This document shows, one piece after another, positions 58,349-61,300 of a stretch of DNA of 64,000 nucleotides. Origin of the DNA: Pavona decussata. Taxonomy: Eukaryota. The DNA is taken from the NCBI GenBank assembly GCA_977016875.1, contig CDRNST010000392.1:186001-250000 (forward strand), read 5' to 3'. Both the position numbers and the translations under genes were made by a program. Positions within the stretch are counted from its first letter, which is position 1, and the number at the start of each line of letters is the position of its first letter. Below the pieces are notes generated by a model, which was not told where the DNA came from, searched no databases, and saw nothing but the letters and a program-made list of their open reading frames with translations.

Positions 58349-61300
58349 TCAAGGCTCACTAAATCCATCACAATCCACGATAACCTTGATGAACATCGTG
58401 TTGTCTTTGACATATTGTCCTTTGTTAATGTCCTCGTGCGACGCGAACTTTCCCGCGCCAAAGCTCGGGTTTTTGCTGCTCCTTGGTCGGCCAAGAAACG
58501 GTTCGTTCTCGGGACACACGTTCGGTTTCACAGAAAACGAGATGTGCTTTCTTTTTTGATGGTCGCAGTTCTGATCCAAAAGATAGAACGTTGTACGGTA
58601 ATTGTACGGCCACTTTAAGAGAGAGTCGTAAATTCCTAGGATAGATGGAGGAGAGCTATTCGTGAGACAATCTTTCTGTGACTTGGGTAACCGCTCTATC
58701 CCCCCTTTCCCAAAAAGACTGGAGGAAGACATTCTTATAAAAGACGAGTCCTATTAAATATGAAAGGTATAATATCAACATTCAATTTGCCGAAGTGCAC
58801 GGACCAACAATTTGTTTTCTTGCCCATTTTGTTACATTGAGCTCGTCAGGTTTTAAGCTGTTATCCTTTCCCTTTCTAACTACTTTCCAACTCTCAAATT
58901 TTCTAAATTGACTTTACTCTCAACCTCCTTGCAGCTTAACAATTTACTTCTAACTCTTGACTATGTAGATAAAATCTTTTTTTCTTTTACAATACATATA
59001 AAATTGGGATGGGCTTACATTCGGAATTTACAAAATTCTAAATATGTATAAAATGTAGTTAGTATTTGTGTGTGAGATTTTAACAACGCTTTCTTATGGT
59101 GTTGTTTGTCTCCAATTTTTATTGATCTTCTTTTGCTCTTGTAACTTACTCTCTGCTCGTAGGAGGCTACAAAAGTGAAGAACTTACCTTGAACCACGCT
59201 GATAAACACAGACAAATGAGTGCCCTTGCCTTTACCATCTCCGTTCAAACAGGCCGAAGCCATGAGCCGGTACCCGTTCCTACTCGTGTAGAATTCTGGG
59301 CTGAAGATCGTCTCCGCCTCCCCGCTCTTCGCATTTTTAAGCTTTCTTTGATAGTCGTCGATTCTCCAGATCAGCTGACTATTTGTGATCTTTTCCAGGT
59401 CTGCAATGCGCTTCTCCTGCATTGCGTTTGCCTCTGTTTGCTCTCTAAGCTGGAGCTTAGTCTCTTCCAGCTCTTTCTTCGTTGCCATGACGACATCGTA
59501 GAGCATTCTCACGTGACCTATAAGTTCGGTTTTGCGGTGCTTGGGAAGTTTGTCTCGACTACACTGTAAACAAAAGAATAATTAAAATTAGAAAGGCGCA
59601 TGCTTGGTGTTTATAAAGTCCACAAGTTTATTACATGTAGTACTGAATAAAGTTTGATTGATTTGGTTGATGCCAGAACGACCTGTAGAGGCATTAGTGA
59701 GTAACAAATGATCAAAATATTCTCTGATTTTTAAACGTTGATCCAAACTAAAATAAATTCATTTGATGGATTAATTTTAAAGAGCTTTGCCAAGTTGCAG
59801 ACGACCAGCTCATTAGTTAGCTTGCTAGTTCATCCTGTGAGTGCGTAGCATCGGTAGTCGAATCGCGTTCAAGCCTGATTTCTCCAAAACTACTGAAGCT
59901 GTTTAAGTCATGCTTTTACTTGTAGTCTTTTGGTCTCTAAGATGTATTGTGTTGTTTCCTAAAGGCCCATTTAAATGGTTTCAACAATTCTTTAAAATGT
60001 TATAACACTTTGTTGAACCAAATGTCGTGGGCGTTTAAATAGGTCGTTCAACATTGCTGAAGGTGAAAAAAATGTTGAAAGCTTGTTGAAAGTGTGTTGA
60101 ATCACATTTAAATTGGTTTAAACTTTCATTCAACATCGATTCAACATTTCCCTTGCTCTCGAAAATGTTGAATGGAGTTGAAACCGTTTGAACACTCCGT
60201 TCAACATTTGTCCAATATTTGCCCAACGTCCGTTCAACTTTTGTTGAACGAATGTTACTCAAATGTTGAAACCGTTTAAACGAGCCTTAAGACAAAAAAC
60301 TTTTGTCTCTTCCTCGACAGCTAGATAAAGGGGTGCCTGCAAACTCATATTTTTGGCTGATTAGGTCTCTTGTAGATCCTACGTCAACTAGCAGCATTAT
60401 CGTTCGCGGTCCTTTGCAGTTTTCACGTCTACTTTATTTTTTGGGGCCGTAGGTCTTAACAGATCCGATATGCTGTGACTTTTAAGCATGGTTTTGTCCA
60501 TGCGTTTCAATGTTAAGATGGTTTTATCCATCTACATTCAGTTGACTTTGCGAGACAGGAATTCGATGCTTTGCCTGCTTTCTCCCTGAGGCACGTGATG
60601 TGGCAGCGCGTGATTCGGGGAGCGGGCAGGTTCAAAGTACGAAACTTGATAGGGCATGGGTTTTGTTGCATTTTATTTGAGCTGGCTCTGTTGCTGGTTT
60701 CATATAGAACTGCTACACCGTGCTGACGAGTTCCAATAAGAACGAAACAGCTGTCCACGGTTGCAGCCCTGTTTTGTCGGTTTCTGTTGCGTTGTTGTCT
60801 CGCAAAGTCAACTCTTTCACGTAGTATCAGCCTTGCAGTTTGTGTTACAGTTTATTTTTGGCTGATTAGGTCTCTTGTAGATCCTACGTCAACTAGCAGC
60901 ATTATCGTTCGCGGTCCTTTGCAGTTTTCACGTCAAACTCCTAGAAAATGCTAGAGGTGACACTTTGATGGTTTAGCATCCCCTAAAGGGGGCAGTAGCA
61001 AGTGTAGCAGTTGCTTTTTTCCGTGCAACACGGTGTTTAGAGCGGGTCAAACACAGTTAAGTGTGTAACTAACAAAGTAACTGAAGGGTACTGAATCTAT
61101 TCTGAGAATATAAATGGTTACCCTATGTGCGCAGCCTATCTCTTCGTATTCACAGCTCATCTTTGTCTTAGGACATTCCTCGTTGACATGGTGTTCNNNN
61201 NNNNNNNNNNNNNNNNNNNNNNNNNNNNNNNNNNNNNNNNNNNNNNNNNNNNNNNNNNNNNNNNNNNNNNNNNNNNNNNNNNNNNNNNNNNNNNNNNNNN

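Follow-up and report, generated by a model that had tools for sequence, protein, structure and literature searches.

A hammerhead-bearing, retrozyme-like insertion with Penelope-type integration scars in a TRAF intron of Pavona decussata

The sequence considered here is a 64-kb stretch of the Pavona decussata genome (assembly GCA_977016875.1, contig CDRNST010000392.1, positions 186,001 to 250,000 of the forward strand), which at its full length of 64,000 nucleotides (nt) is referred to below as the window and is numbered from its first letter. An intron of a TRAF gene in this window carries a non-coding element that is built from a 505-nt unit and contains a hammerhead ribozyme, and the structure, copies and mode of insertion of this element are the subject of the present analysis (Table 1). 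The TRAF exons were profiled one by one, and the upstream zinc-finger exons also match the zinc-finger structures of TRAF4 and TRAF6. Because TRAF exons lie on the minus strand at both sides, the element is intronic and antisense to its host gene, as an earlier note on this DNA had proposed; the host intron is the one preceding the coiled-coil/MATH exon.

Table 1. Coordinates of the element, its internal features and the TRAF exons around it in the window
Feature	Position	Strand	Remarks
Inserted element	60348-60934	+	587 nt = 1.16 copies of the 505-nt non-coding unit; unit position 1 = 60348
5′ copy of the terminal redundancy	60348-60429	+	Unit 1-82; includes an internal copy of the distal (B) 3′-end site, 60411-60429
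3′ copy of the terminal redundancy	60853-60934	+	Together with 60848-60852 forms the 87-nt 'tail' ending at the distal (B) site ..CCTTTGCAGTTTTCACGTC (60916-60934)
Proximal (A) 3′-end site ..CCTTGCAGTTTGTGTTA	60831-60847	+	Unit 484-500, 92 nt 3′ of the predicted cleavage site
Left target-site duplication copy AAACTC	60341-60346		A at 60347 target-derived or untemplated
Right target-site duplication copy AAACTC	60935-60940		Matches the left hexamer
Type I hammerhead ribozyme	60717-60761	+	Rfam Hammerhead_1 (RF00163), full model 1-45
Structured RNA domain (predicted)	60540-60813	+	Unit 193-466; encloses branch hairpins and the hammerhead
TRAF downstream exons (coiled coil and MATH/TRAF-C)	59015-59512, 58352-58732	-	MATH_2 and TRAF-mep_MATH above cut-offs
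TRAF upstream exons, TRAF-type zinc fingers	61790-61930 (partial), 62534-62704	-	zf-TRAF 33 bits against a cut-off of 27

A repeat finder run on the window recovered the two 82-nt direct repeats, 100% identical and spaced by 505 nt, exactly where the earlier note had described them, and the AAACTC hexamer was likewise found on both flanks, with a single extra A (60347) between the left hexamer and the 5′ repeat. The unit, with a G+C content of 45%, further contains the perfect 18-nt inverted repeat announced in the note (60540-60557 with 60796-60813, 100% complementary), which brackets the ribozyme. Within 600 nt, the perfect 82-nt repeat and the perfect 18-nt inverted repeat are each far below chance expectation. 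Neither a second copy of the unit nor an inverted partner of the element was found in the window.

The MATH-exon open reading frame (ORF) led to a 93%-identical ORF (P0020) on contig L010 of an ENA assembly, which runs collinear with the window for ~10 kb (80-96% identity). On this contig, window position 60943 joins 60349 directly and the element is absent exactly there, leaving an orthologous empty site (...CCTGC GTACTC ATAAG...) with one hexamer position (GTACTC) followed by ATA. The left junction retains the A-TA of this empty site, the target duplication comprises 6 bp without mismatch, or perhaps as many as 9 bp if one mismatch is allowed, and TA microhomology with the target leaves the 5′ bound of the element uncertain by 1-2 nt. 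Owing to the L010 empty site, the entire 587 nt, including both 82-nt repeats, is inserted DNA, and the 82 bp are neither duplicated host DNA nor a misassembly, two possibilities that the earlier note had raised. This is a genuine, lineage-specific single insertion. A local tandem duplication or assembly artefact with no transposition is hardly credible: an assembly gap (an N run at 61197-61372) does lie 260 nt from the element, but the exact empty site with its one hexamer position, the flanking target duplications and the presence of ~30 copies with the same ends at unrelated loci in independent assemblies all speak against it. The insertion is also young, because the empty site occurs in a genome whose introns differ by 4-12%. 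The note had drawn this conclusion from the identity of the repeats; recency stands, mainly by way of the empty site, which is the better evidence, whereas 0 differences in 82 bp bound the repeat divergence only to less than about 3.7% (95%).

The type I hammerhead with a palindromic stem III reported in the note reaches 39.4 bits against a gathering score of 34 (E = 1.7e-6 over the whole 64 kb). Its conserved core is intact, with a helix I of 6 bp, a helix II of 4 bp closed by a 6-nt loop and a helix III formed by the palindrome ACAGCUGU (60747-60754); the predicted GUC cleavage site lies between 60755 and 60756 (unit 408/409). Searches with Rfam, even at E <= 1, disclosed no other ribozyme on either strand of the window, and a viroid-like replicon with a second ribozyme of opposite polarity was rejected on this ground. 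In structure predictions the catalytic fold of the monomer (-6.6 kcal/mol) is less stable than an alternative non-catalytic fold (-12.5 kcal/mol), and the dimer cofolds into a double hammerhead with an 8-bp helix III (-29.1 kcal/mol). The palindromic helix III is thus predicted to favour the double-hammerhead form, and these fold energies fit the dimer-dependent behaviour described for metazoan type I hammerheads (PMC4209133). Since the window copy has only one hammerhead, it would be unable to release unit-length RNA alone and is most likely an inert dead-end copy.

Further copies were sought with the antisense 81-residue ORF of the element, which led to 19 spurious 'proteins' in ENA assemblies whose contigs make up loci L001-L013; BLAST combined with inspection of the ends yielded 17 arms at 11 distinct loci with 88-99% identity. 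About 30 further copies were recovered overall, including more diverged relatives of 72-81% identity, and the hammerhead motif is retained in 16 other close arms. Among the 17 close arms there are 16 different 5′ ends (unit 1, 26, 54, 132, 154, 188, 199, 226, 247, 273, 275, 318, 322, 379, 393, 419). Their 3′ ends fall at site A in eight cases (..GTGTTA, unit 500) and at site B in seven (..CACGTC, unit 81-85 of the next unit), 82-87 nt apart, with two elsewhere; site A, a terminus in 8/17 close copies, is read through in the window copy. The circularly permuted copies with variable starts that the earlier note had expected are thus partly borne out: the 5′ ends vary and the phases differ, but the 3′ ends lie at two fixed sites and are not freely permuted. 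An origin of the A and B regions by duplication of one another was rejected, as their local alignment is no better than that of shuffles (36 of 500); they have only a short TTGCAG-type motif in common, and in 505 nt a repeated 9-mer is no rarity even by chance.

The junction between unit positions 505 and 1 is crossed by nine arms, and arms longer than the unit were found in different phases (1->82 in the window, 419->501 in L004, 318->500 through the whole unit in L011, and also 273->88). Two hammerheads are present in L011, at a distance of 535 nt. Copies that exceed the unit in more than one phase can only come from a circular or multimeric template, and the suggestion of a circular or tandem RNA made in the note is upheld on this basis. 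None of the 17 close arms has a 5′ end at the cleavage site, nor do ends cluster at unit 409, which leaves no sign of linear monomer templates. Target duplications at the close loci measure 5-11 bp (TCACGCG, CCGTT, ATACAAGG, TTTCCA, CATTTTGGAAA, AAAATAGG, AAAACAG) and, across nine loci with close and diverged copies, 5-12 bp.

Head-to-head inverted pairs occupy 6/11 close loci, and at >= 5 further loci the spurious ORFs switch strand at a head-to-head junction. The arms of a twin differ at 6/1364 shared sites (0.44%) compared with 1.9% between loci, so that each twin pair stems from a single event and a single template. One A end is combined with one B end in 8/9 of the pairs with canonical ends, close and diverged copies being taken together (binomial P ~0.02 under independent assortment, a statistic subject to ascertainment and to the manual classification of ends). 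Because twins from a single template near-constantly combine a short (A) and a long (B) end, the mobilising enzyme may work as a dimer and prime the two DNA strands at separate internal sites, 82-87 nt from each other, of a single retrozyme RNA that is probably circular; this is put forward as a speculative reading and is, on balance, doubtful. Such an enzyme, if real, would account for a long-standing puzzle, the 'tail at one end only' seen with Penelope-like insertions. At the twin locus L005, the minus arm is broken by ~340 nt of foreign sequence including a poly-C run, and three identical transfer RNA (tRNA) genes (56.4 bits each) form a 700-nt tandem cluster (L005 1110-1791) ~1.2 kb from the twin.

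These ends also bear on a different origin, namely a SINE-like element (short interspersed nuclear element) moved by a LINE (long interspersed nuclear element), with the inverted pairs arising by L1-type twin priming. LINE insertions show 5′ truncation, target duplications and inversions too, and an L1-like reverse transcriptase (RT) lies 1.7 kb from the copy at L001. Nevertheless, this origin is very improbable. No poly(A), A-rich or microsatellite 3′ tail was seen at any inspected copy end, and the unit has no tRNA or other small-RNA match in Rfam. The pairs have both outer ends at particular positions within the unit, and their arms cover much of the same sequence (up to 505 sites in common), whereas twin priming gives adjacent, non-overlapping segments. 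The L001 copy, moreover, is flanked by a target duplication of its own and has no relation to the neighbouring RT, which was rejected as the autonomous partner because it is L1-like.

More diverged relatives were reached through the ribozyme. The exact 33-nt hammerhead core had no match in JGI (Joint Genome Institute) metagenomes, and a degenerate version of this pattern retrieved 103 metagenome stretches, ~20 of which are 72-81% relatives of the whole unit from JGI Ga0126339, Ga0126342 and Ga0126343 (the last a Cyphastrea sp. coral metagenome) and several ENA sets. They point to scleractinian corals, and the TRAF gene cluster is in line with this. The unit of these relatives is ~508 nt long and has two alternative 3′ ends ~82 nt apart, ..CCTTGCAGTC.. 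and ..CCATTGCAGTTTGTGTTAC; they, too, occur head-to-head (5-7 relatives), with target duplications of up to 12 bp. The remaining stretches, all from ERZ1740055, have only the ~50-nt ribozyme in common. In this set, ~80 contigs (among L015-L117) contain hammerheads that are 83-93% identical over ~50 nt within unrelated flanks and have host genes nearby (G protein-coupled receptors, C2H2 zinc fingers, peptidase M1) and no RT; the ribozyme seems to be a module common to several non-autonomous families in another animal genome. Three contigs (L099, L107 and L113) hold the same element fragment (unit 319-494 plus 3-37) beside an ORF of equal length, 262 residues and no Pfam family, and it looks as if a larger repeated sequence had taken up this fragment.

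Comparison of the copies points to constraint on the RNA. Measured against the window copy, the overall mismatch rate is 2.7%, compared with 0.8% for the hammerhead and 0.4-0.6% for the two 3′-end regions. The minimum free energy predicted for the circular 505-nt unit is -182.8 kcal/mol, compared with -138 +/- 6.4 for dinucleotide shuffles (z = -7.0), and in the predicted fold the 18-bp inverted repeat forms the core of a ~45-bp interrupted helix. Covariation was assessed on an alignment (A2) of 11 sequences over unit 193-466, with the structure predicted from the window copy. This structure pairs 80.5% of cells as opposed to 36-41% for slid partners, a fraction inflated by the derivation of the structure from one of the aligned sequences. 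Twenty-three pairs are changed on both sides, against a shuffle mean of 15.9, and only 1/500 shuffles attains 23. The hammerhead helices are 93.9% paired, and 4/12 of their pairs are compensatory; L014 alone, a 672-nt contig from another ENA sample with 81% identity over unit 193-466, contributes three compensatory hammerhead changes. By these sequence comparisons the hammerhead and the predicted structured domain of ~270 nt are conserved with compensatory changes, and the ribozyme is judged to be under selection.

The element encodes no credible protein, in accordance with the note: its longest ORFs comprise 81 (-), 55 (+) and 51 (+) residues without Pfam hits, and the 'relatives' of the 81-residue ORF are just other element copies, variable in length. 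When the unit is taken as tandem or circular, the longest plus-strand frame has about 76 codons and no Met and opens within the hammerhead. The terminal redundancy is a phase-variable partial tandem and not a long terminal repeat (LTR), no search having been aimed at a primer-binding site or polypurine tract. The regions after 105 related hammerheads were without an ORF of >= 165 residues, the long ORFs of these contigs being host genes or members of no family.

Taken together, the data are best read as one recent insertion of a non-coding retroelement that is not autonomous, belongs to the animal 'non-LTR retrozyme' class and was copied by target-primed reverse transcription of the type employed by Penelope-like elements (PLEs), a reading to which we would give a probability of roughly 0.78. 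From the insertion scars alone, PLEs are suggested as the copying machinery. The earlier note had opposed a retrozyme to an ordinary PLE pseudo-LTR; its retrozyme-like assignment is supported, and the opposition falls away, since the redundancy is a Penelope-type pseudo-LTR or tail as well. The element is both 'retrozyme-like' and 'PLE-style', and the two are not alternatives.

Briefly, a source locus with >= 2 ribozymes would be transcribed, and its hammerheads, best paired via the palindromic helix III, would excise a unit-length RNA that becomes ligated into a circle. A Penelope-like RT/endonuclease would nick the target and begin reverse transcription inside this RNA, for which the two fixed 3′ ends are the observed trace. 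The start would be at A (unit 500) or at B (87 nt further), each following a (C)CTT(T)GCAG motif, and complementary DNA would be synthesised back along the RNA over lengths that vary from copy to copy and at times exceed a full circuit, which would yield the variable 5′ ends and terminal redundancy that are observed. The second DNA strand would often be primed too, yielding the observed head-to-head twins from one template with a tail on one side only, and repair would leave the observed target duplication of 5-12 bp. For the window copy, synthesis would have proceeded from B and halted after 587 nt; the 82-bp repeat may be regarded as a pseudo-LTR or 'tail' because synthesis would have begun at the distal site B on a longer-than-unit RNA.

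Several points weigh against this reading. Copies were sampled via a spurious ORF and a hammerhead pattern, and the counts are not a census. Among ~30 arms there is no array longer than ~1.4 units, and just one copy (L011) has two ribozymes. A PLE gene with RT and GIY-YIG domains is absent from the window, from beside any copy and from beside any related hammerhead examined, and the frame that follows the hammerhead matches, among 1.84 billion representatives, only short spurious ORFs (31 ORFs of 72-304 residues, no Pfam family). Finally, the tails of PLEs are described as 30-40 nt long, and that of the present family, at 82-87 nt, is longer.

The hammerhead, the redundancy and the end structure, all as in PLE pseudo-LTRs, might instead mark the remnant of an autonomous PLE, either a solo pseudo-LTR or an internally deleted copy, with no independent non-autonomous family; the ~76-codon frame even starts within the hammerhead, where the ORF of the anole PLE starts. 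Such a remnant is very improbable. The 505->1 junction recurs in nine independent close arms and, with a period of ~508 nt, in the 72-81% relatives, which argues that the short unit itself is what is copied. The ~76-codon frame lacks a Met and matches no long protein, and an RT/GIY-YIG ORF attached to the copies, which the note had named as the mark of an ordinary PLE, occurs in none of the ~30 other copies.

The nature of the template separates the favoured reading from its main rival, which retains the same element and enzyme but assumes a linear read-through transcript of tandem genomic copies, with no circle and with a hammerhead irrelevant to mobilisation. For the anole PLE, multi-copy RNA that has not been processed is the main substrate in vitro, insertion proceeds normally with ribozyme mutants, and the cut site is not the end point of any RNA-seq read (PMC11167929). 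L011 shows that tandem copies with two units exist, and as no 5′ end lies at the cleavage site, nothing demands cleavage. Read-through is nonetheless somewhat unlikely. Arrays of more than ~1.4 units are missing among the ~30 arms, and a 1.4-unit source would yield only shorter offspring, with no regeneration of two-ribozyme or longer-than-unit copies unless arrays or circles intervene. That the hammerhead is conserved better than any other segment, and with compensatory changes, argues that it matters to the lineage, and the 505-nt circle is predicted to be unusually stable. A circular template is therefore favoured over a multimeric one, because of the lack of longer arrays, the inability of short sources to regenerate two-ribozyme copies and the apparent selection on the ribozyme.

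If the speculative reading of a dimeric enzyme given above holds, the family would also provide the first scar-level evidence for hammerhead circles as templates of Penelope-type reverse transcription. The link between retrozymes and PLEs has so far come mainly from co-occurrence and from the similarity of their hammerhead-bearing ends. The family adds young, cleanly bounded insertions, with an empty site, that bear the Penelope integration signature without a protein gene, this signature consisting here of starts at two fixed positions inside the unit, a tail confined to one side and inverted twins copied from a single template. A conserved, covariation-supported 270-nt RNA domain around the hammerhead is a further gain, and so is a testable rule, under which every twin should combine an A end with a B end. 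In the host, the element is an intronic polymorphism, antisense to a member of an expanded immune gene family, and is probably neutral.

The window holds >= 2 TRAF paralogues on the same strand, ~41 kb apart: a second TRAF-like piece at 17538-18176 (-) is a single ORF of 213 residues with a complete MATH/TRAF-C domain (146 bits) and is the only ORF of >= 180 residues in the window. Beside the assembly gap, 61480-61760 consists of simple-sequence tracts that read as poly-Ser, poly-His or poly-Asn depending on the frame. Microsatellites have been reported as favoured targets of some PLEs; the window element is not inserted in these tracts. Upstream of the insertion site, at 59950-60300, short degenerate direct and inverted repeats on GTTGAA(A)C / TTCAACATT motifs, including 47-nt arms (59952-59998 and 60252-60298) with 74% complementarity, look like a decayed satellite-like element or a MITE-like one (miniature inverted-repeat transposable element). 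Two further segments of the window, 55561-56716 (~1.15 kb) and 57440-57840 (~0.4 kb), are missing from the collinear L010 and are probably other young mobile-element insertions; in the former, 56551-56631 and 56635-56715 form a nearly perfect hairpin of 81 nt, and a palindrome rich in G+C lies near 55619-55656. Conversely, L010 has ~700 nt (1973-2669) that the window lacks near 63378. A tRNA-like sequence at 35022-35095 (-), which at 36.5 bits is barely over the Rfam threshold and has several non-standard pairs, may represent either a tRNA gene in decay or the head of a SINE of tRNA origin.

Among known systems, the plant LTR retrozymes are also non-autonomous hammerhead retroelements, and they are likewise thought to spread via circular RNA (PMC4918200). 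They differ in having type III hammerheads inside true LTRs, a primer-binding site and a polypurine tract, target duplications of 4 bp and Gypsy partners (PMC4918200). The window element, in contrast, has a type I hammerhead outside the redundancy and a target duplication of 6 bp. Plant retrozyme LTRs are ~350 bp long. The non-autonomous elements of the Chlamys group, such as MRC1 of Chlamydomonas, formerly mistaken for LTR elements, resemble the present family as short PLE dependants with pseudo-LTRs and head-to-tail multicopy insertions, but belong to the green lineage and have 3′ ends in common with identified autonomous partners, of which none was found here (PMC8557442).

The hallmarks of PLE insertions are partial tandems (pLTR), strong 5′ truncation, an adjacent inverted 5′-truncated copy and a tail that is often at one end (PMC8557442). 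With PLEs such as Penelope/Poseidon, Neptune and Naiad, the family accordingly shares the pseudo-LTR, variable 5′ truncation, the adjacent inverted 5′-truncated copy and an optional one-end tail from two alternative internal start sites. In the Anolis PLE 'PAc', reverse transcription starts inside the RNA at two neighbouring sites located 85-92 nt beyond the hammerhead cut, and the enzyme both cuts and elongates the two DNA strands (PMC11167929). A hammerhead ~90 nt upstream of the first start is common to both elements; site A here lies 92 nt past the predicted cut, a single parallel that may be a coincidence. Differences from PLEs are the lack of an RT/GIY-YIG ORF, the length of the unit (505 nt against 3-4 kb) and the position of the starts, which follow the (C)CTT(T)GCAG motif and are not inside an AC-rich stem-loop.

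The closest counterparts are the animal non-LTR retrozymes, for instance the 220-245-nt family of Acropora millepora, which have been proposed as PLE dependants (PMC7229834). A 2026 preprint ties retrozymes phylogenetically to pseudo-LTRs and counts single-ribozyme monomers as offspring of retrozyme families (bioRxiv 10.64898/2026.07.22.740005). In common with these retrozymes, the present family has a canonical metazoan type I hammerhead with a 6-bp helix I, a 4-bp helix II and a short palindromic helix III; it is non-coding, with a G+C content below 50%, target duplications of more than 4 bp and no features of LTR retrotransposons, and its predicted circle is highly self-paired (PMC7229834). 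The cnidarian setting, here that of its relatives, is a further likeness. Its unit of 505 nt exceeds the range of 170-400 nt given for animal retrozymes (PMC7229834) but is inside the 51-972 nt of the preprint (bioRxiv 10.64898/2026.07.22.740005). Its copies are dispersed, 5′-truncated or twin-inverted and at most 1.4 units long instead of forming long tandem arrays; the window copy has one ribozyme, and the circular RNA of the family is a predicted one. With these likenesses and differences, the window element is a new member of the animal non-LTR retrozyme or Penelope-dependent class.

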